A model generated the notes under the pieces. That model searched no databases, had not been told where the DNA came from, and saw only the letters and a list, made by a program, of their open reading frames with translations. A DNA stretch of 64,000 nucleotides from Epiperipatus broadwayi (Eukaryota; Animalia; Onychophora): assembly GCA_028023455.1 (NCBI GenBank), contig JAQFVV010000002.1, positions 18,228,001-18,292,000 on the forward strand, read 5' to 3'. The translations under genes and the position numbers were made by a program. Below, piece by piece: positions 1,829 through 57,720 of the stretch (position 1 is the first letter of the stretch; each line of letters begins with the position of its first letter).

Positions 1829-2660
1829 TAATAACTGAAATATAGGCTTATTATATACCTGTATCAATATACATAATATATAGGATATATGAGCACAGTT
1901 TTCCCACGACCCACCACTTTCCACTCTATCTCATAACACTGATACACTTGAACACATATAAGTCGAAAAGATAAATAATCACCAATATTCGTATTTCATG
2001 CTAAACCAGCAATAATCAGTTGGTCCAGATTATCATCTCTTCACATATATGCAATAAGTGCTCAAATATATATTAAGATAGCCAATCTTCATACTTTAAT
2101 GGACAGGCTTCAATCCACTCCACACTTTAACTCTTTAATCGTCGATCCAACTAAAAATCTGATGAGGGAATGCTCAAAGGCTACTCTGAGGCCGAGATTC
2201 TCATCACACTCATGTTGACCTAAAGTCAACCTGACCCCTCATGTACAGAGCATAATCCATTTAATATATATACAAGGGATGGGAAGACATCTCCACTATG
2301 TAATAACTGAAATACAGGCTCATTATATACCTTATCATTACATGTAATATATAGGGTATATGAGCACAGATTTTCACATGACCCACCAACTTTCCACTCT
2401 ATCTCAATAACACTGATACACTCAAACACATATGTGTCGAAAAGATAAATAATCACCAATATACATATTTCATGCTAAACCAGCAATCATCAGTTGGTCA
2501 AGATTATCATCTCCACACATATATGCAATAAGTGCTCATATAGATATATATTAATATAGCCAATCTTCATACTTTAATGGACAGGCTTCAATTCACTCCT
2601 CACTCCAACTCTTCAACCATCCATCCAATTGAAAATCTGATGATGGAAAGTTCAAAATTA
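1829..2660 (-). mobile_element. Family B PLE pseudo-LTR / retrozyme-like tandem repeat, ~472-bp unit, ~1.75 copies
   Basis: ataactgaaata(t/c)aggct at 1831 and 2303 gives period 472; each unit has an HHR motif on the minus strand; same family at 17.1-18.6, 32.6, 38.4 and 58.4 kb. Confidence 0.8.
2449..2507 (-). ncRNA. Type I hammerhead ribozyme motif (family B)
   Basis: Minus strand: ACCAA-CUGAUGA-uUGCU gguuu AGCAu-GAAA-UAUGUA-UA/UUGGU; stem I extended by AUAAUC/GAUUAU across a bulge; predicted cleavage between 2460 and 2459. The upstream copy (1975-2040) has G8>U. Confidence 0.75.
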
Positions 2661-4099
2661 GCATCAAAACAAAGGTGAATTCAGTACAAACATCTTCAAA
2701 CAGGCCATTGTAAGTCAAAGACCTTCTCACAGATAAACATACTCTAATGTTAGTGTTATAATTCCTTTGTGAGATTTGTGCACTTACTTCTTTGGCAAAT
2801 GAATTCATTTTAATCAATATTAATCTTTTTTTTTTACAAAGCACTGTTAGTGATTGAACCAGTTTTATTAAAACAGATATTTGCCATGACAACATAAGGA
2901 TTGATGAGTCTGACGATAATTAAAATTGCTTTTGAAAATTAACTAAGCATAAAATGTTAAGGAATGTATAAATATTAGCAAAACCTGATGAACATTATCT
3001 ATCATTTCTTTTTTCTCTTTATTTTCTTTTCTTCCACCCTTTTTATTCTCTTCACTTTTCTTCTTTCTGTTATATTATATTTATAATATGCTAAACATTT
3101 TTATTTTAATATTAATTAAAAATCATTAACATTAAAAAAACAGATAAGCAATACATGCAAAGTCAAGTTTATTATAATATACAGAGACAAGATTTGCAGA
3201 AAAATTCTTTACTTATACTTTTCTAAATATATTTAACTGTTAGTTATAATACATAGGCTAATATGGAACTTGTTTTGAATGATATTATTTTCTTCTACCC
3301 TCCAGATATTATTGGCCTATCCAATAATAACTAGCAAAGGAATTAAATTGCCATTTTTAGATTCATAAATACTGAATTTATCAATATAACCATATAACTA
3401 TTCTAACAAAGACAACAATCAATAATAATAGGTAAAAAAAATTATATTAAATACTTTTATTGATTGTGCACTAAAAAGAAATAAAATAATTGTTTCTTCA
3501 ACCACATTTGGAGTTTTTAGATTTAACTTCAAACATAGTGGGGGAGGAGGGAGAAATTAATTAAGTCAACCCCTTGCTATAAAAAAGAGGGATTGATATG
3601 GACCCCCCCCTCATGATTTTATTTCAAGTTAAAACTAAAAACTCAAATTGCAGTTGAAGAAACAATTATTTTTTTAATGCACAATCAATAAAAGCATTTA
3701 ATATATATAAAAAAGATCTCTATTATTTTTAAGTTTTTAGTATTTCCACATTTAATGAAAATGTAAAACTATATCATACTTTAAAATGACTGGACATTTA
3801 TAGTTGATATATATATATATATCAGTAGATATTACTGCTGTAAGTTAAAATGTATTATTATTATGACATAATATATATATACAGTAAGAATTTAAAATTG
3901 TTTACAAAATATTAAATTAAAAAAAAAATTATACTGCCCTCTTGTGATTATTATTTAAAGCAAATTAAATTCTAAAAATAATTGTCAACTGCAAAACATG
4001 AAATTAATGAATATTTTTCATATTGTTCCTGTCCTCTGTTTTATATCTAATATAACTAGTTGATATACTGAAAAGATATGTGTTTCAAATGGATTAGGG

Positions 4100-8380: not shown

Positions 8381-8686
8381 TCACATGACCAACACCTCTT
8401 ATGCTTGTGTATAACTGTTGTTAAAACAGGAAAAACTCACTATACGTATTGCCACACACAGCAAGGTAGAGTAATTAATGAATGCCAGAAGGCTTGTGCA
8501 TAAAATCCCCATATAGTGCCTACTCATCCAATATCCCCAGACTAGTTTCTGGCTTCTCACTGATGAAGGCCATAAGCCAGAAACTAGTCTGGGGATATTG
8601 GATGAGTAGGCACTCTAGCTTGCTGTGTATGGCAATACATACAGTGAGTTTTGCATGTTTTAATATATAAATATAAGGTCATGTGA
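8381..8686. mobile_element. Family A PLE pseudo-LTR, inverted pair
   Basis: tcacatgacc...ggtcatgtga termini; antisense arm joined to sense arm at the HHR; about ten copies of the family in the window. Confidence 0.8.
8554..8595 (+). ncRNA. Minimal type I hammerhead ribozyme motif (family A)
   Basis: UUCUCA-CUGAUGA-aGGC cauaa GCCa-GAAA-CUAG-UC/UGGGGA; palindromic stem III; predicted cleavage after 8589. Confidence 0.7.
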
Positions 8687-9266
8687 AATTTACCAAGTCT
8701 ATTTAAATAGTAGTCCATTTCTAGAAACAATAAAACACCACAGCAATTTCTGTCCAATATGGAAAAAGTTGTGGTAATTGCTTAGTCTCTAAAATTAATT
8801 AAAAGCTATAAAATATAGTAACGGTAACCACCTATAGAATTTTCTTCCTATCACTAATGAAAGCTGCATCATAAATATAAACATATTTTATTTTTACAAT
8901 CAGCACATCGACACTTATCTGAATCTGATTAATCCAGATTAACTTGGGATCTTTATCTCTATCTAAGAATAGCTAGATATCCATATACTTACCATATATG
9001 ATGATTAGTTAGACTAGCTATAAAACATTTACCCAAAAGAATAATCCTATGCCTGTGATATGAATTTTTTAAAGGTTTTCTAGCTTTGCCAACTCATCTA
9101 ACTACTCTTCCATGAAATTCTTCAGTTAAATATTTTTATAAAAAGCACATGAAACATAAACCCATATGCCACATATATATATATTAATTCTAATATTCTC
9201 AGGGATAAATGATGAATTCACAGTATTATTTCCAGGAGCCATATAATAAAAATATAATAGCTAAGT

Positions 9267-9308
9267 AGCTGACATTTCAGAACAATAACAAGTACTTTCC
9301 TCAGAGCT
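9267..9308 (-). ncRNA. Ultra-minimal type I HHR motif (family C)
   Basis: AGCU-CUGAGGA-a-AGUA cuuguuauug UUCU-GAAA-UG-UC/AGCU. Confidence 0.6.
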
Positions 9309-9686
9309 TTTTCTTTCTCAAATTATAAGAATATGTGCGGTGAGATTCCTTCTATTATTGATGCTAATATTATGTCACACGGCTAAATAAATAATAAATC
9401 TGTTTAGCTTTTTGTAATTTTTGATATATATATATATGTTATTTCCTGGAACTTCTTCTGTTTAGTAAAAATATAATAGCTAAATAGCTGACATTTCGGT
9501 TTTACTTAGAGTTTCTTGTTTTTTAAATTAGAAGCTCTGAGGCATGCACTTATTATATTGAAATACCAGTTATTTAGCTATTATATTTTTACTATACACT
9601 CATTCTCCATATCACCACAGACATTCTTATTATTTGAGAAAGAACACTCCATCTCACCAACACACATTATTATTATTTGAGAAAGA

Positions 9687-9728
9687 AGCTCTGAGGAAAG
9701 TACTTGTTATTATACTGAAACATCAGCT
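9687..9728 (+). ncRNA. Ultra-minimal type I HHR motif (family C)
   Basis: AGCU-CUGAGGA-a-AGUA cuuguuauua UACU-GAAA-CA-UC/AGCU; predicted cleavage after 9724. Confidence 0.65.
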
Positions 9729-9842
9729 TTTTTTTTTTTCCATATGTCATAGCATCGGCCGGGACGCGAACCCACAACCGTCTGCAACCAACTACTTGCT
9801 TGCAAGGCAGTTGCGATGACCTCTCGGCTAACAATGCTTGAC
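9729..9842 (-). mobile_element. tRNA-derived SINE (family S)
   Basis: Minus strand gtcaagcattgttagccgagagg (A box) ... gggttcgcgtcccggcc (B box) ... poly-A; flanking aaacatca duplicated. Confidence 0.85.
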
Positions 9843-11765: not shown

Positions 11766-12104
11766 TTATTATTCAAACATTCATAAAAACTCAAGCACTG
11801 GAACTGATAGGGCAGGAATACAATTTGCAGATCTCGGGTCAGTCTACCATAGAATCACAATTATTTATGTTAGTTCATATTGTTAGTAATGGTAAATTGA
11901 AAATGTTTTTATATTTCAAATAATATGCTATATATGTCTAAGTTTATAAATAAACATGCAACGTAACATAGGAAATAAAATAAAATACATATTAAGTCAT
12001 GCAAAAGTTTATTCTCAAATATTTATTAAATAAAAATATTGTAATACGAACTTAATTTTAAACGTTGCATGTTTGGTTAATATTTAATATCTTATTAAAC
12101 CATA

Positions 12105-12146
12105 GGTTGAGTGTTTCGAGAGACACGGCTCTCATAATCATAGCTT
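12105..12146 (-). ncRNA. Variant HHR motif, A3-U8 core (family F, left arm)
   Basis: agcu-AUGAUUA-u-GAGAG ccgugu CUCUC-GAAA-CAC-UC/aacc. Confidence 0.55.
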
Positions 12147-12666
12147 TGCGAAGTAACTGATTATCTAATGTTATGCAAATCTATGCAAAGTTCAAGTATT
12201 CCATTTCCTGGATATAGAATAACACGTTTCTTTTCTGTTGATGGTGTTCCTGTCTATTGCAATAAAGCAGGCCTCTTTTATCTTTCTTCTCAAATCGTTT
12301 CCCTCTCTGCAGACTAAGCTGATTATTTGTGTTTTGCATGGATGTCCTGAAAACTTTTGGTGCTGTGTGCAGCACTGGAAAGTAGATTATCTCAACATAA
12401 ATATTTTATACTAAGACACAATCCGATCCAGCACATAATTCCATTTTTGCACAACACCAAAAGCTTGCAGGACATTCATACAAATTGCAAATAATCACCT
12501 TAGTTTGCAGAGAGGGAAACAATTTGAGAAAATAAGAGGCCTTCTTTATTGCAATAGTCAGCAATGCTATCAACAGAAAAGAAACATGTTATTCTATATG
12601 CAGGAAATGGAATACTTTAACTTTGCATAGATTTGCATAACATTACATAAACAATTACTTCACAAA

Positions 12667-12710
12667 GAGTTATGATTATGAGAGCTATGTCTCTCGAAAG
12701 TACTCAGCCC
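12667..12710 (+). ncRNA. Variant HHR motif, A3-U8 core (family F, right arm)
   Basis: gaguu-AUGAUUA-u-GAGAG cuaugu CUCUC-GAAA-GUAC-UC/agccc; palindromic GUAC loop; predicted cleavage after 12705. Confidence 0.6.
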
Positions 12711-14138
12711 ATGGTTTAAAAAGATATTAAATATTAGCTTTGTGTTTATGTGTTTATAGCGCTAGTATTGAATTAAATATAAATGATAAATTATAACTTT
12801 ATGAATAAATATAATGTGTATATATCCTTGCTTGATTATAGCAATTTATATACATATGCAATTACTTATCTTTATTTATGAAATGATTTTTTATCTTTTT
12901 TTAAAGGTAGTTAAATTGTAATACAATTTTATCTTTTGAGAAATAATTTTGAAACGATAATTCATCAGAATCTATAAAAATATATATATATATTTTGCTA
13001 CAAAAAATGTTAATATTAAACATAATCTATGACCATACAAATGATACACCGTTTCTCTACTATTAAATGCAAATTGAGAAGAGAATCTTTTAAAAAATGT
13101 GAATATTTTTTTTAAAAAAAAGGAATATTCATGTTAGAGAAATATGAACATCAAACTTATAATACCTTTAAAATAATGAATAAAATAAGCTAATAAGGAC
13201 ATGTGTCCTTTTGTAAGACTTTTACCAATTTGAACACAAATAAACATCAAATATTTAAAATAGTCTAGTTAAAGTAACCATACTAGGTAGTACATATAAT
13301 AAAAAATATAGAATCATTTTTTATTTATTTTAAAAGTGAAAAATCTAAAAAATAATATCATATTTTATTATATGTTATTGGAAAATGTAATTTTAAAATA
13401 AATAAAAAACACTATTTGTTATGTTAAAGAAAATAATTTACTTTTTAACTGTTGTTTCAAATCTGAAGATAACATTGCTAACAGAAAAAATAATACAAAA
13501 AATTAAATGACACCTGCTTGTTCTTTAATTTAAATGTTTTCAAAATGTAGAATCTGAATTATTTTTCTTACCTATATGCATTTTCCTTCAAAACTATATA
13601 CACTATTGCATTATGCAAATTTTTACCTCACAAAATTTGAATAACTTTTGGAAGGTCATATCACAAATGGATTTAAAATTAGCTAACATTTGAATAATCT
13701 GCAGTTAAAATAAATTATTTCTACTGAATATACAAAATAGATAACTCAATGGTAGAACAGCAGTTTACTTGGATTGTTTACTGAACAAGAGAAAGTATTA
13801 AGAAAAAGTGCCAGTCGAGATTGGTATAATATTCTTCCATTCTATTAATTATTATGTGATAGCAGTCTAGATAATATTAGGTCTTTTAAGCTGGAACAAA
13901 TGCGACTATTGATTAACATTGTAACAACAATATTTAAAGGACTCAATACTATTTAAAGCACTATCATTCAACAAATATATATATATATTATTTGAAAGGG
14001 TGTCTGAGAAGGAGGCAGAACTTTATTCACGTCCTGTAGTTCAATATAGCAAAAAATACTGAGAATCCATTTTGGAGATACCTGATTGTCAACTTCTCTC
14101 TATAAATGAAGATTCTTTACAATTTATTTTACATGCAA

Positions 14139-14823: not shown

Positions 14824-14929
14824 GACAAGCGTTGGTGGTTGAGTGGTCAGCACAGCTGCCTTACAAGTAGTTGTCCTGGGTTAGCGGGTTCGCTTCCCGG
14901 CTGATGCTATGACACATGAAAAAAAAAAA
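14824..14929 (+). mobile_element. tRNA-derived SINE (diverged family S subfamily)
   Basis: gacaagcgttggtggttgagtggtc...gggttcgcttcccggctgatgctatgacacatg plus A-tail. Confidence 0.75.
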
Positions 14930-16330: not shown

Positions 16331-17644
16331 AAAAACTTGGAAAAACAACTAATTATTGAAACTAAAATAAAAATGATACATTTTGTTAATACAAAAATAA
16401 AATGTCACCCTTAAAAATAAGTAAATAAATATAAATAACCCAAAAGATATAAATAAGTATATATTATACAGTGTAAAAAAAACATACCAGAAGTAAAATA
16501 TAATAAACTAAGATGATGGATAAAATTATTTTTAAATTGACACATGTTTCACCTGTTGGTAGTCTTCCTCAGAACTATAAATAATATGGGAAATGGATAA
16601 TAAAACTAAATAAAAAAGTAGAAAATTGAATATGTCTTTTAAATCATTTCAAGACCCTCAAAGCTAAATAGGAAAAGAAATGTGTAAAAAAAAAAAGTAA
16701 AAGCTATCACTTGAAATGAAATAAATCTCAACATCCCATATTCATAATTATCAATGATGACATATGATTTTTGACAATAATATTCCCAAGTCTTCAATTT
16801 AAAAAAAAATGGAAAGTAAAAATTAAAAAGAAGAAAACTACTTCATATGGTAAAATGAAGCTTTTAGTTCCAGGACTGAAATGATCAGAGAAAATATGTG
16901 TGAAAAAAAATAATAATAATAATAATGCAAGATTGTTTTAATTTATATATAGATATTACAATTCATGAAAATTTCTGGATACTACAATGTAAAATATATA
17001 TATTTTAATATTCTACAAGGTTACTGCCCAAAATCTTCTATGAATAAGGATATATTTTTCTTCCTATGAAAACTTTCATTTCTATATATATAAAACTCTG
17101 ACTTTCAAGCTGCCTATAACTATCCACTCTATCTCATACAAATGACTACATAAATGTGAAAAGGATGAATAATCTCCAACATACATATTTTGTGCTGAAT
17201 CGGCATTCTTCAGTTGGTCCAGATCACCATCTCCCACACATATATACAACCAATGTTCAGTTTAAATTACAGTAGCAAATCTTCAAACTTTAATGGACAA
17301 GCTTCAATCTTCTCCACCCTCCAACTCTTTAGCCATCTATATTATTGAAAATCCAAGGATGGAATGCTCAAAGCTCTTGTTGATGCCAATATTACTGTCA
17401 TACCCATATTGACTTTATGTAACTCTGACTCCTCACATGTAGGATCTTAATATGTCCATTCAAATATACAGAAAAGGGATGGGCATAATGCAGGATGAAT
17501 ATGTAATATTTAAATACATGTATATTGTCTATACTAAACTTAATGTAATTAGAAGGGGTGTGAACTCAAACTTTCAAGCTCCCTACAACTATCCACTCCA
17601 TTATAACCAATATACATGACCACCTACATATGAAAGAGATAAAT

Positions 17645-18413: not shown

Positions 18414-18459
18414 GATCAACTGATGAGTGCTAGTTCAGCATGAAATATGTATATTGGAG
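18414..18459 (+). ncRNA. Type I HHR motif (family B)
   Basis: UCAA-CUGAUGA-GUGCU aguuc AGCAU-GAAA-UAUGUA-UA/UUGG; predicted cleavage after 18453. Confidence 0.75.
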
Positions 18460-19086
18460 ATCATTTATCTTTTTCACATGCATGTACTTAGATATTACAT
18501 ATTCATCCTTTATTTTGCCCATCTCTCTTCTCTATATTTAAATGGCCATACTATGATCCTATTTGTAAGGAGTCAGTGCGACTTAAAAGTCAACATGGAT
18601 ATGCTAATAATATATGTATTTAAATAGGAACTAATATAAATACAATAATATCTAATTTATTGCAAATCTTCTTCAGATATACAGTACTTTCACTTTCTAT
18701 ATCTGCACTTTCAAAACTTGAGTTCTCATCTTCACTATTCCGTAAGGGTACATCATTTTCAGGCCATTTAAATTGCCACCAAACTTTATAATTGAACTTT
18801 ACAATTTCTTTGTCAATTTGCTTTCATATAAAAGTACATTTTTCTATTACAATTTGAATCATTTTTCTAAAATAACTGCTACAATAATGTTAATAATATA
18901 GAAACTATGATTATGGAGCAACAAGGGCTCTGAAAGTGCTTAGTCTGCGGAAATTATAATATAAAACAGTCTAAAAATTATTATGTAAAAGTTTCACTGC
19001 AATGCAGCAGCGTATTATTAATTAAAATAATTTATATTTTTACAAATATTTTCTGGAAAAAATGATTAATGTATAAAAACACTCTA

Positions 19087-38430: not shown

Positions 38431-38792
38431 AATTAATATAATATATAGGGTTTCGAACTCAGACTTTCACATGATCCTCAACTATCCAAGCCATCTCATA
38501 TTGCTGACCCACGTGATCGCACACGTTGAAAAAATAAATAATCACCAATATACGTATTTCATGCTAAAACAGCAATCATCAGTTGGTCCAGATTATCATC
38601 TCCCACACATATACAATCAGTGCTCAGCTTTATATTAAGATAGCCAATCTTCATACTTTAATGGACTGGCTTCAAACAACTCCAACCCACAACTTGTAGT
38701 TGAAAGTTATGTGAAAGTCTGAGTTCGAACTCCTATATATTATATAATATGTGCAGGTATGTGTAAGCCTGTATAGTGTATTAAAAATTAAT
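38431..38792. mobile_element. Family B element with short inverted 3' copy
   Basis: tatatagggtttcgaactcagactttcacat / atgtgaaagtctgagttcgaactcctatata; interior matches the 472-bp unit. Confidence 0.8.
38538..38596 (-). ncRNA. Type I HHR motif (family B), best-preserved copy
   Basis: AUAAUC-ugg-ACCAA-CUGAUGA-uUGCU guuuu AGCAu-GAAA-UACGUA-UA/UUGGU-GAUUAU; perfectly palindromic AUACGUAU stem III; predicted cleavage between 38549 and 38548. Confidence 0.8.
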
Positions 38793-39254
38793 ATAGTTTT
38801 AGCACTTATTGATCATTGTATGGAAAAGTATGAGAGAAAAAAAAGAGTTCAATTTATACAAGATTAATACAACACAAATACAATATTAAAAAACAACCAA
38901 TAGAAACAGAGCATGTATTTAAAAAAAAAAAAAACATCATTCAAATGATTCTATATATTAATAATAAAAAAAACCGATAATTAAAGAAGCTATTCTATTT
39001 AATAATATTAAATATAGTTTAAATAAAGATTTAGATTTAAAAACATTGGTTTTATAGTTTATTGATAAAAGATTTAAATGGTAAAATTAAAAGAAAACTA
39101 AGTTATAATTATAAAAATCAAAAAAGCAGGAGTTACTATATAAAATAGAATTATTTACTTTATTAAATTGTAAAATACTATATATATATATATGTGGTAT
39201 ACACACAGATAATGAAGCTAATATGTATAATCGAAAGCAAATAATATATTATTG

Positions 39255-39300
39255 TAGCTGAGAGCTTTCGAAAGACTTCTTGCTCTCATATTCATAGCTA
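39255..39300 (-). ncRNA. Variant HHR motif, A3-U8 core (family G, left)
   Basis: UAGCU-AUGAAUA-u-GAGAG caagaagu CUUUC-GAAA-GCUC-UC/AGCUA. Confidence 0.65.
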
Positions 39301-39772
39301 TTACCTTGTTAAAAAGTGCATTGTTAGAAGGAAAATTTATGCAAAATATTGCAAATTAGTTATAACTGCCATTTTCGGAACAGGGCAAAGCAGGCTTCTC
39401 TTCAATTAATGGATTTAGGATCGCTTGCTATATGTAATGTGTCTCTGGGGAGTCCAGGACCAATATTGCCAACAGAGTGGCTCAGAACAAATACCTTTAT
39501 AATAAAACTAAAACCAAACAGGAAGGCAATTCCAATTTTTGTTGAGCATGAAAAAACAACAGGGCATAGATTTGGACCCCTCTGCTAACATCGTTTGCTC
39601 AGAAAGACATGCTGCTAAATGTAAGATCAGAGAGGTATTATATATAGCAAGCGATCATAAATCCATTAATCGAAAAAAGCCTGATTGCCCTGTCCTGAAA
39701 ATGGCAGTTATAACTAATTTGCATTATTTTGCATAAATTTTCCTTCTAACAATGCAGTTTTTAACAAGATAG

Positions 39773-39818
39773 TAGCTATGAATATGAAAGCAAGAAGTCT
39801 CTCGAAAGCATTCAGCTA
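39773..39818 (+). ncRNA. Variant HHR motif, A3-U8 core (family G, right)
   Basis: UAGCU-AUGAAUA-u-GAAAG caagaagu CUCUC-GAAA-GCAU-UC/AGCUA; predicted cleavage after 39813. Confidence 0.6.
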
Positions 39819-40984
39819 AAATAGCATCTTATACTCACTATCGATTATACATATTAGCTTCATTATTTGTGCATACAGCACATATATATAGTATATAAAA
39901 TAGAGTAATTACAATGGAAATGTAAAACTTTATTTAGTTACTGGAGTTGGTAAATAAAAAGTATAAAATTTATTATATGTTAAATATGCATACAAATTTA
40001 CATATAATGTGCAATAATAGTTATATAAATAAATAATTTAATTATAATAATTAAAAAATAATAAATTAGATTTAAATAAATTAAAATGGTTTTCAAAAAA
40101 CTAAACCTCCCTGCCATAGATCACATGTACGATGTTAAAAATAAATACAAAAGGTTATTATGTGTTTAAAACTTTGTAAAAGTTTATTTATTTATAAAGC
40201 AAATTATAATGTATTAACAAGTTAAAAAATAATAATAATAATTTGTAAGAAATGAAAAGTTTATTTTTTTTGTTTATTTTTAAGTTAATAATTCAAAAAT
40301 AAAATTAACTATTTTCAAAAATGTTAAATGTCAATTACACCCCACCAATAGTTGCTATGGGAATATGAAAGGTTACCAAACAAAAAAAAAATTATCATCT
40401 GCTATAAAATTTTGTTTAGGTCAATTGTTTTTTTTTACATGCAAATGAATTGTATTAATATATATTCAAATTTATTTTAATGATGGGGTGGAATTGTAGT
40501 TGGATTACTAACTTCATCTTTCTGGAAATGTAGCTTTCTTAATGGAACTATGATAATGTACCACTAATGAATAATACCTAATTATATCTACTAAAGTTGG
40601 ATCTTATTTGCAGATGCTGTAACAAAACTCGATTATTAGATAAATAATGAAAATTAAAGGTCAATTCTAGATTACAAGAAATCACTGGGGGAAAAAGTAT
40701 GTACACATATTAAATATATCTAGTTTCCTTTATTATAAAGCATGACTACCAACAAAAAGGAACTTATGGTTTCTGGAAAAATCTTCAAGTTGAATTATTT
40801 ATGTGAAATCATGATAAGACATTTGTTATGACCAGAGATCTCATTGTTAAATTTATATTAATGTCTAAAAGGTGTTGACATCAACAGAAAAACAAAAGAT
40901 AAATTTGGTAAGGACTTTAAATTTTTCTTATCTGATATAGTGGTATATTATTTTAATATTTGCATCAGACAATCTGACTGGATA

Positions 40985-42684: not shown

Positions 42685-42977
42685 ATTGCTTACAATAACC
42701 CCCCTCATATACAATTTAATGCAAAATTTTTTTAATGATTCTTTTATTTTCCTGACAATTTTGACTGTCCCGCAGTCTTCATCAGAGCAATCTCAATCTC
42801 CTCTCTGTCCTACAGTCTTCATCAGAGTGATCTCGATCTCCTCTACCTTTGAAATGGTAGAGGAGATTGAAATCACTATGATGAAGACTGCAGGACAGTT
42901 GAAGTTGTCAGGAAAATAAAGGAATCATTAAAAAAAATTGCATTAAAGTGTATATGAGTGGAGTTATTGTAAGCAAT
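42685..42977. mobile_element. Family H inverted pair with decayed HHR motifs and a 40-bp internal duplication
   Basis: Minus: CUGAUGA-a-GACUG cggga CAGUC-AAAA-UUG-UC; plus: AUGAUGA-a-GACUG cagga CAGUU-GAAG-UUG-UC. Confidence 0.7.
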
Positions 42978-46051: not shown

Positions 46052-46233
46052 AAACAGGCAAAGCACTCTATATGTATTGCCATTCAGTACAAGCCAGAGT
46101 AATCAATGGAAGCTAGAAGGCTTGTGCATAAACTACCCATCTAGTTACTCATCCAATACCCCCAGACTAGTTTCTGACTTGTGACCTTCGTTAGTGAGAA
46201 GCCTTGTATCTGAGAGCACTGCACCTAGGATCT
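46052..46233 (-). mobile_element. Family A pseudo-LTR (HHR core mutated to CUAACGA)
   Basis: gactagtttctgacttgtgaccttcgttagtgag; abuts the 5' side of the PLE remnant. Confidence 0.75.
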
Positions 46234-49036: not shown

Positions 49037-49482
49037 ATAATATTAAATTGTCCAAGCACTTTACTACTGTTACACCATGGGTCCCCAATCCTATGCCCGT
49101 GGCCACCATGGCGCCCACAGACCATTTTACGTGTGCCTGCCGCTATCCGAACATGATAAAAAATTATTTATCTGATACAAATAAATTTAGTTTTAAAAAA
49201 TCTTTTTGTACATTGTGTATTATTAATAATATCCAACTATAAATTTACATTGAAAAAGTAAATGGTGTCCGCCACCTGGCTGGTATTATAGAATGTGCTC
49301 TTAAGTGCAAAAAGGTTGGGGACCCCTGTGTTACACAATACTTTATTTACTATCCTTTCTTATAGTTTACAATTCTGAAGAAGATTGATTGCTGGGGCAA
49401 TCAAAACTGTAAACTGTAAGAGAAGGGTAGTAAATAACACATTGTGTAACAGTGGTAAAATGCTTGGACAATTTAGTATTAT
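49037..49482. mobile_element. Family I inverted pair centred on a decayed HHR
   Basis: acaauu-CUGAAGA(49375)-a-gauu-GAUUGC uggg GCAAUC-AAAA-CUG-UA/aacugu; left arm interrupted by a hAT MITE. Confidence 0.65.
49076..49328 (+). mobile_element. hAT MITE, 253 bp, same family as 46954-47341
   Basis: catgggtcccc / ggggacccctg termini; perfect 8-bp TSD tgttacac. Confidence 0.9.
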
Positions 49483-53460: not shown

Positions 53461-53675
53461 AGAATATGGCTAAAATATAAAAAGATAAGTGAAATGTATG
53501 CGTAGAAATACACTCATAAATTCCAGATAATATAGATGATAAATGAAAAGATTAAATTTAACATTTGAGTAAATAAGCCACAAAACTAAATAAGCAAATA
53601 AAAACAAGATTTTTTTCCACTATGACTATGCCTCCTAATGGAAGTTTTAGTAACTAATACACAATAGATGATTCT

Positions 53676-53730
53676 GTCCAGACTAGTTTCAAGCTTATGG
53701 TTTTCATCAGTGAAGATTTTTGGATTTGGA
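53676..53730 (-). ncRNA. Family A fragment with intact HHR core
   Basis: UUCA-CUGAUGA-AAAC cauaa GCUU-GAAA-CUAG-UC/UGGA; similarity stops ~5 nt after the predicted cleavage site. Confidence 0.6.
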
Positions 53731-54864: not shown

Positions 54865-55262
54865 TTGCTCATAATTGTTATTAAAACAGGCAAAACTCTC
54901 CATACAATAGTGCCACTCAGTTTAAGCTAGTGCAGTGCTCTCAGATCCAAGGCTCCTCACTGATGAAAGCCACAAGCTGAAACTGGTCTGGGAATATTGG
55001 ATGAATAGGCACTAGATAGGGATTTTATGCACAAGCTTTCTGGCATCCATTGATTACTCTGGCCTGCAATCCTAAGATCTAAGTGCAGTGCTCTCAGATC
55101 CAAGGCTCCTCACTGATGAAAGCCACAAGTTAGAAATTACTCTAGGAATATTGGATGAGTAGGCACTAGATAGGGATTTTATGCACAAGCCTTCTGGCAT
55201 CCATTGATTACTCTGGCTTGCACTTAGTGGCATTACTGTATGGAGAGTTTTGCCTGTTTTTC
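54865..55262 (+). mobile_element. Family A: short inverted end plus head-to-tail dimer (~153-bp unit)
   Basis: CUGAUGA at 54960 and 55113; first HHR (54945-55002) has intact core GAAA-CUGG-UC, second is degenerate (GAAAUUACUC). Confidence 0.85.
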
Positions 55263-57236: not shown

Positions 57237-57720
57237 AAACATCACATGATCACCATCTCTTATGCTCACACATAACTGTTATTAAACAGGCAAAACTTTC
57301 CATACAGTAGTGCCATCGTGTGCTAACCAGAGTAATCAATGGACGCCAGAAGGCTTGTGCATAAAATCTCCATCTAGTGCCTACTCATCCAATATCCCCA
57401 GACTAGTTTCTGGCTTGTGGCTATATAAGCTATTGAGCTTAGATTGAAAATATTGTGTTTTCAATTTCATTCTCATAATTTTGTAGTTAAGTAGAGATAA
57501 AAGGTGGCTGCTGGAGGGTTGCATTAGATCCTAAGACCTAGATGCAGTGCCCTCAGATCCGAGGTTCCTCACTGATGAAGGCCATAAGCCAGAAACTAGT
57601 CTGGTGATATTGGATGAGTAGGCACTAGATGGGGATTTTATGCACAAGCCTTCTGGCATCCATTGATTGCTCTGTTTGGCACAGGGTGGCACTACTGTAT
57701 GGAGAGTTTTGCCTGTTTAA
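57237..57720. mobile_element. Family A: inverted partial plus long sense pseudo-LTR
   Basis: Antisense arm 57237-57421, sense arm 57422-57720. Confidence 0.85.
57557..57615 (+). ncRNA. Minimal type I HHR motif (family A)
   Basis: AUCCga-ggu-UCCUCA-CUGAUGA-aGGC cauaa GCCa-GAAA-CUAG-UC/UGGUGA-ua-UUGGAU; predicted cleavage after 57601. Confidence 0.7.

Follow-up and report, generated by a model that had tools for sequence, protein, structure and literature searches.

Paired minimal hammerhead motifs with an A3-U8 core in a head-to-head insertion of Penelope-like element 3' ends from Epiperipatus broadwayi

The insertion at 39185-39890 and its probable endonuclease remnant

The window analysed here is a stretch of 64,000 nucleotides from the onychophoran Epiperipatus broadwayi (GenBank assembly GCA_028023455.1, contig JAQFVV010000002.1, positions 18,228,001 to 18,292,000 of the forward strand), and all positions given below count from its first letter. 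It is AT-rich (28% GC) and belongs to an animal genome rich in hammerhead-bearing repeats. The segment 39185-39890 is a head-to-head pair of 5'-truncated 3' ends of a Penelope-like element (PLE), sited in a TA microsatellite, and each of its two arms carries a minimal type-I hammerhead ribozyme (min-HHR) motif in which an A-U pair takes the place of the C3-G8 pair of the consensus core. We refer to the repeat family of this element as family G. Its features, together with those of a second pair of the same layout, termed family F, are as follows.

39185-39447, minus strand: left arm, an inverted 5'-truncated PLE 3' end (repeats I1-I3, contig depth, loose ends of other copies at 39180-39185)
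39448-39890, plus strand: right arm, likewise a 5'-truncated 3' end of this PLE but longer (inverted repeat, loose ends of other copies at 39890)
39185-39197, no strand: (TA)n run forming the left insertion end (mirrored at ~39880-39890; read from the sequence)
39134-39155, plus strand: candidate target-site duplication (direct repeat D3, 19/22 match to 39889-39910)
39448-39736, plus strand: degraded remains of the C-terminal half of a probable GIY-YIG-type PLE endonuclease open reading frame (ORF), with its stop codon at 39734-39736
39405-39452, minus strand: left arm, final codons that can still be recognised as endonuclease (LPRDTLHIASDPKSIN)
39773-39818, plus strand: min-HHR motif of type I with A3-U8 core, 46 nt (A3 at 39778, U8 at 39783, extra U at 39785, G12 at 39804, C17 at 39813)
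39255-39300, minus strand: min-HHR motif of type I with A3-U8 core, 46 nt (A3 at 39295, U8 at 39290, C17 at 39260)
12078-12736, no strand: family F, a head-to-head pair of PLE tails with A3-U8 motifs (12666-12711 on the plus strand, 12147-12103 on the minus strand)

The arms form an inverted repeat (39185-39447 versus 39628-39890) of three collinear blocks, I1 to I3, that are 87-91% complementary. Read on its own strand, each arm runs from the last ORF codons through a spacer of ~36 nt and the 46-nt motif into a terminal sequence of ~75 nt that ends in (TA)n. This layout and the further 5' reach of the right copy, which extends to ~39448, identify the arms as two 5'-truncated 3' ends lying head to head. 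When assembled contigs of sequencing runs are aligned to the region, their depth is already raised at 39130-39189, goes up at ~39160-39185 and falls to background past ~39909; together with the loose ends of the copies at the insertion borders, these steps define the element as a high-copy repeat with just these ends. If 39134-39155 is a target-site duplication, 39156-39184 (29 nt) could be read as a 'tail' that extends the insertion on one side; this reading is uncertain. Known PLE insertions feature an inverted 5'-truncated copy beside another one, a bias for (TA)n targets and a tail of 30-40 bp at one end (PMC8557442), and pairs of min-HHRs on opposite strands, 100-700 bp apart, have been described in PLEs (PMC4209133). 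The insertion in the window shows the same architecture with regard to 5' truncation, the adjoining inverted truncated copy, the (TA)n target and the hammerhead motif in the terminal repeat. As both hammerhead motifs reside in the arms of one inverted repeat, they are not independent of each other.

Upstream of the right-arm motif, the ORF reads ..VEHEKTTGHRF, is interrupted by a frameshift near 39580 and continues as ..NIVCSERHAAKCKIREVLYIASDHKSINRKK...LHYFA. The endonuclease string on which the original prediction relied is thus present but broken, with VEHEKTTGHRF in one frame and KIREVLYIASDHKSINRK in another. Only the C-terminal half of the protein, ~75 decayed codons, is left, and it retains the residues H-x3-TGH ... 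KIRE..YIA....INRK. The proposed homology to the tail of family F is borne out by BLASTP (41% identity over 32 amino acids, E 4e-7) and by the common ending LH(Y/R)FA-stop. Pfam models found no match in the tail fragments, and a word-indexed protein search with the 59-amino-acid F tail returned nothing. A profile built from the F and G tails and run against 1.84 billion representative proteins retrieved 26 short proteins (best E 4.4e-6), which align as a PLE-type GIY-YIG endonuclease, ..YIGE..R....EH....TGH....IV.RE....R.IKEA.YI...N..LNR..GKY.LP..W; one of the 26 has a weak Pfam GIY-YIG hit. On the contig that encodes another such endonuclease match (L122), no clear hammerhead is seen downstream. 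A reverse transcriptase or a complete endonuclease is not found in the window, nor is any ORF of at least 130 amino acids except an unrelated one. The lack of an ORF for a telomerase-like reverse transcriptase at 39185-39890 is due to the 5' truncation and is expected for truncated PLE insertions.

The end of the ORF overlaps a block TTTGCAT-N3-TTTGCATAA (39700-39736 in family G, 12600-12637 in family F) that holds a perfect octamer, ATTTGCAT. We considered octamer-like promoter boxes upstream of the motif and rejected this reading in favour of the last codons, LH(Y/R)FA-stop, that both families have in common at this place. Conservation of the block is probably due to coding, and it may also have a promoter role in the pseudo-LTR (long terminal repeat).

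Hammerhead motifs with an A3-U8 core

The right-arm motif reads UAGCU AUGAAUA U GAAAG CAAGAAGU CUCUC GAAA GCAU UC AGCUA, and the left-arm motif reads UAGCU AUGAAUA U GAGAG CAAGAAGU CUUUC GAAA GCUC UC AGCUA. Both arms therefore agree with the original prediction as to the A3-U8 core, the five perfect base pairs of stem I and the location of C17 at 39813 on the plus strand. In the active hammerhead, C3 and G8 form a tertiary Watson-Crick pair (PMC3884650). In both arms the core is AUGAAUA instead of the consensus CUGANGA; the identities C3 and G8 are not found, and the two positions are nevertheless Watson-Crick paired as A-U. The canonical residues U4, G5 and A6, A9, G12, A13 and A14, the A15.1-U16.1 pair and C17 are present in both arms, as are the hallmarks of min-HHRs, namely an extra U between A9 and position 10.1, a G10.1-C11.1 pair and a helix III of one base pair with a short loop. 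In the right arm, 39788 is part of an A.C mismatch in helix II, and decay has left GCAU as loop 3; helix II of the left arm (GAGAG/CUUUC) has a single G.U pair and loop 3 is GCUC. The 37-nt motif pattern has two matches in the window and none in 100 dinucleotide shuffles, and a relaxed descriptor finds four motifs with A-U and three with C-G at positions 3 and 8, compared with 0.5 and 0.1 expected by chance.

The covariance model R1 was built from 24 canonical min-HHR seeds with C3-G8 (20 metagenomic, four from the window, none from family F or G), with 3-8 annotated as a base pair, and was searched over the whole window with filters off. It recovers the left G arm with 23.5 bits (E 6e-5), the right G arm with 20.7 bits (E 4e-4) and the two F arms with E 4.7e-4 and 1.4e-3, and places all four in the expected register with A3-U8 on the 3-8 pair. 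Seventeen matches lie in the window at E<0.06; at the 3-8 pair, 13 of them have C-G and four have A-U, and neither an unpaired combination nor a one-sided change occurs. Across these 17 motifs, 89.7% of the cells are paired, versus 57.9% in shuffles and 26-37% with the partners slid, and in an alignment fitted to the model all nine stem pairs have changed on both sides across the families of the window. A candidate third A3-U8 family at 18901-18947, with GGAGC/GCUCU as helix II, which would amount to covariation in this helix, was rejected: it is found by the relaxed descriptor only, for which 0.5 chance A-U hits are expected per window, and stays below 2 bits with R1.

The motif of family F is AUGAUUA-U-GAGAG-loop-CUCUC-GAAA-GUAC-UC, in which AGUACU is palindromic, and it has in common with family G the head-to-head layout, A3-U8, helix II, the extra U and the homologous endonuclease tail. 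Identity between the families amounts to 54-63% for the endonuclease-tail codons and ~57% for the last codons plus spacer, rises to 80-83% in the motif, where only N7, loop 2, loop 3 and outer stem I differ, and drops to 34-48%, that is to unalignable sequence, 3' of the motif. The view that the whole flanking sequence differs from family F consequently applies downstream but not upstream, where the families can be aligned at ~57%. That position 7 differs (AUGAUUA in F, AUGAAUA in G) while A3 and U8 are kept was seen correctly. Judging from these sequences, F and G are two diverged families of a single PLE lineage, the common ancestor of which already had A3-U8.

Copies of family G outside the window were sought in the Logan contigs of four runs, aligned on 39100-39980 at a likeness of at least 80%. 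The DNA run from the same organism alone contributes more than 2000 contigs. In 96% of the depth, 39788 is changed from A to G, which turns the A.C mismatch into G-C and restores helix II to GAGAG/CUCUC; T to C at 39811 (90%) and A to C at 39263 (90%; U to G on the motif strand) yield GCGC as loop 3. The majority A15.1-GCGC-U16.1 is the palindrome AGCGCU, which has decayed in both copies of the window. The family-majority sequence is thus a cleaner hammerhead than either window copy and mends the defects of both. No variant at A3 (39778, 39295) or U8 (39783, 39290) is present among the best-supported 40 of 191 variant sites in the four runs. The majority sequence of this high-copy family has A3-U8, which is not a product of decay in the window copy. 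At C17 of the left arm, U appears in 29% of the depth, and U17 is a permitted H17; transitions prevail among the differences between copies, consistent with CpG decay of dead copies.

When folded with RNAcofold, two majority sequences give an exact double hammerhead, with stem I in trans, helix II and an intermolecular helix III of 6 bp, at -25.7 kcal/mol versus -19.4 kcal/mol (2 x -9.7) for the monomers taken separately. RNAcofold does not return this structure for the two decayed motifs of the window. A small run labelled 'RNA?' contains diverged contigs of the family and shows neither transcription of the copy at 39185-39890 nor ends at C17.

One run labelled as another organism (X6) contains a contig of 107 nt that covers 39697-39803 with one difference (99% identity) and has A3-U8. 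The window copy is therefore 99% identical to this contig and yet ~10% off its own partner arm; the contig may come from a very closely related organism, from a young subfamily present in both or from DNA carried over between samples.

Inheritance, decay and possible function of the A3-U8 core

With high confidence, we view 39185-39890 as an old, dead double insertion of PLE 3' ends, the min-HHRs of which inherited A3-U8, would have cleaved as dimers in master copies and have decayed in the window. In active master copies, two motifs, provided either by tandem copies in one transcript or by two separate RNAs, would pair via the palindromic AGCGCU to build helix III and would form stem I in trans. 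The resulting double hammerhead may cut 3' of C17, in a reaction that is probably slow and assisted by the protein of the element. An A-U pair is isosteric with C-G, and residue 8 contributes its 2'-OH to catalysis and not its base. The copies in the window would have undergone neutral decay since insertion and, damaged as they are in helix II and loop 3, are probably poor ribozymes.

The original prediction went further and regarded the covariant core as a maintained trait of one PLE clade rather than decay. What holds is that the core does not stem from decay of this copy and that it is inherited at the level of a lineage, whereas its maintenance by selection, its restriction to one PLE clade and its catalytic activity are matters that we infer. 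We only tentatively suggest, as a possibility on which we would not insist, that natural selection maintains the A3-U8 core as a variant capable of catalysis, and that this core is the mark of an entire PLE clade spanning several related species.

Several points weigh against our main reading of 39185-39890. Rfam models yield no hammerhead hit for the region or the whole window, either at gathering thresholds or at E<=10; this says little on A3-U8, because the canonical-core motifs of the window are missed as well. Twenty of the 24 R1 seeds come from loci retrieved by means of a pattern that was based on F and G. For this reason ~13 of them, about half of the seeds, have GAGAG/CUCUC plus the extra U, which inflates the R1 scores for the arms of both families; the helices of the other seeds are different. 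The common ancestry of F and G means that the A-U swap counts as one event and not two. Among the copies, low-frequency changes of A3 or U8 are possible at the other 151 variant sites, and G12 (39804, a CpG site) is A in 23% of the depth, most copies being in decay. Molecule ends do not pile up at 39813 or 39260 in the data, which consist of assembled contigs only. Finally, PLE hammerheads are poor cleavers in vitro and dispensable for insertion in vitro (PMC4209133, PMC11167929).

Part of this would fit a catalytically dead relic, i.e. a motif that spread when a doubly changed master was amplified, through a founder effect and not through selection for cleavage. Hammerhead cleavage is unnecessary for PLE insertion in vitro (PMC11167929), Naiad PLEs thrive without hammerheads, and the motifs may simply be parasites of PLEs (PMC8557442); the single origin event and the prevailing decay of the copies, to which the changes at G12 belong, point in the same direction. 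A relic would, however, have had to acquire two transversions that hit precisely the two bases of a single tertiary pair and spared all eleven remaining core residues, G10.1-C11.1 and the palindromic helix III. Between F and G, moreover, no block is better conserved than the motif (80-83% versus ~57% upstream), and intermediates are lacking: none of the 17 window motifs is unpaired at 3-8, and no A3+U8 double is found among the ~85 copies of a canonical family from a metagenome. We therefore consider a dead relic rather unlikely.

Still less probable, in our opinion, is that the motif has been conserved for a role other than cleavage, either as a fold recognised by the reverse transcriptase/endonuclease or as a dimerization signal of the template RNA, with the identity of 3-8 left free. 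A PLE protein is needed for hammerhead activity in vitro, implying that it binds the RNA in this region (PMC11167929), and the AGCGCU palindrome favours RNA dimers. A mere binding hairpin, however, does not need strict G5, A6, G12, A13, A14 and C17, and the data on 39185-39890 do not support such a role. Chance resemblance in AT-rich DNA, for which one could invoke the silence of Rfam and the 4.4 hits of the relaxed descriptor per shuffled window (0.5 with A-U at 3 and 8), is effectively refuted by the lack of the exact motif in the shuffles, the R1 E values of the G arms, the fact that in F as well as in G, diverged as they are, the motif follows a PLE endonuclease tail as expected, and the mending of the window-copy defects in the family majority.

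When the full-length hammerhead structure became known, its main surprise was the C3-G8 pair. No in vivo evidence speaks more strongly than natural covariation for the view that positions 3 and 8 matter through their pairing and not through base identity. A high-copy A3-U8 lineage would add the reverse order of purine and pyrimidine to the known natural repertoire, which comprises C-G and U-A, and would provide a ready natural compensatory mutant for mechanistic work. If A3-U8 is indeed competent and maintained, it would be the first natural covariant whose position 3 is a purine and whose position 8 is a pyrimidine; counts of hammerheads from searches that depend on CUGANGA would be systematically too low, and covariant cores may be present in some of the PLE or retrozyme lineages described as 'HHR-less' or 'core only'. 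Standard tools overlook genomic hammerheads of a large class, as Rfam models report none of the 17 or more motifs of the window and CUGANGA descriptors would miss A3-U8; this touches ribozyme censuses as well as claims that certain retroelement clades lack them.

Further hammerheads and comparison with known systems

The window contains at least 17 hammerhead motifs, and Rfam reports none of them. A canonical min-HHR family (CUGAUGA-A-helix II-GAAA-CUAG-UC, with the palindrome ACUAGU) is present in at least six copies that score from 33 down to 12 bits with R1. Another canonical head-to-head pair (CUGAGGA) has AGCU/AGCU as stem I, as in F and G. Its helix III inserts, UG and CA, are CpG-decay products of CG, so its ancestor probably had an ACGU palindrome; no endonuclease tail is recognisable upstream of these two motifs. 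These and further motifs with C3-G8 are found at the following positions.

8554-8595 (plus), 57566-57607 (plus), 46159-46200 (minus), 55107-55148 (plus), 53675-53716 (minus) and 54954-54994 (plus): copies of the ACUAGU family, found with R1
9265-9310 (minus) and 9685-9730 (plus): canonical head-to-head pair
42748-42791 (minus), 16533-16578 (minus), 2904-2947 (plus) and 2454-2499 (minus): hammerhead-like motifs of other families, C3-G8, R1 E 0.001 to 0.4
38543-38588 (minus), 18414-18459 (plus) and 49369-49417 (plus): hammerhead-like motifs of other families, C3-G8, R1 E 0.001 to 0.4

Sub-threshold Rfam hits to microRNA families (mir-3923, MIR7533) on both strands at 8515-8614 and 57358-57644 fall on hammerhead-bearing foldback repeats and are probably repeat hairpins, not microRNA genes. 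The sole Rfam hit above threshold is a tRNA-like sequence at 14829-14908 on the plus strand (29.9 bits, threshold 29) with an insertion of 12 nt in the region of the T arm, which may be a tRNA-derived repeat or a pseudogene.

Metagenomes were scanned with a pattern open at N3, N7 and N8, which resulted in 120 loci, most of them from one canonical C3-G8 family. Two loci with A and U (L047, L073) were rejected as they are without stem I and UH and look like chance matches, and the single match on a viral contig has a canonical core. The dominant family (within L004-L120, JAAUYA01..., one GenBank metagenome assembly) comprises ~85 copies of GAU-CUGAGGA-U-GAGAG-ggagauc-CUCUC-GAAA-CUAG-UC-AUC and presumably comes from eukaryotic host DNA in the sample. 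It serves as a canonical control: single changes at 3 or 8 are seen in a few copies, the double change to A3+U8 in none. Four other contigs (L003, L030, L080, L119) each encode several min-HHRs with CUGAUGA-U ... GAAA-CAUG-UA in common and with differing, fully compensated helices II and stems I (GGGUG/CACCC, GAGCG/CGCUC, GGGCAU/AUGCCC, GACC/GGUC); this is clear covariation in a PLE-type family.

The PLE tail, the head-to-head insertion and the dimer-type min-HHR are all known; what is new is the orientation of the core pair as A3-U8. Tolerance towards exchanges of 3-8 in vitro reportedly depends on context. The hallmarks of min-HHRs (a nucleotide after A9, G10.1-C11.1, a 1-bp helix III) were defined together with the proposal that they act as dimers (Cervera & de la Pena 2014, PMC4209133). 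We found no paper reporting A3-U8 in connection with a hammerhead in the searchable literature, in which coverage of subscription journals is partial.

The metazoan PLE min-HHRs (PMC4209133) resemble family G in several respects: they reside in the pseudo-LTR or 3' region behind the GIY-YIG ORF, are of type I with a short stem I, have a helix II of at least 5 bp, the extra nucleotide and a palindromic loop suited to dimers, and occur at very high copy number and as opposite-strand pairs a few hundred bp apart. They differ in that the published descriptor demands CUGANGA and would miss A3-U8. Natural covariation of the 3-8 pair has been noted as U3-A8 in several hammerheads with an otherwise canonical core (Perreault et al. 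2011, PMC3088659) and in ~1,300 min-HHRs of the Cercyon PLEs of Schistosoma mansoni (PMC4209133), likewise a PLE lineage. There the orientation is the reverse, as family G has the purine at position 3 and the pyrimidine at position 8. In the Anolis Poseidon element PAc, also a PLE with a hammerhead, the 3-8 pair can be swapped experimentally: an engineered C3G/G8C double mutation partially rescues the hammerhead, which cleaves only with the protein of the element (PMC11167929). In contrast to family G, PAc has a C3-G8 core that overlaps the start of the ORF, and its swap is engineered and not natural. The canonical min-HHRs of the window and the metagenomes, finally, have the architecture of family G, an additional nucleotide 3' of A9 and a helix III that is palindromic (ACGU, ACUAGU, ACAUGU); some possess the very stem I of family G, AGCU/AGCU, and one metagenomic family the identical extra U and GAGAG/CUCUC, but all of them keep C3-G8.

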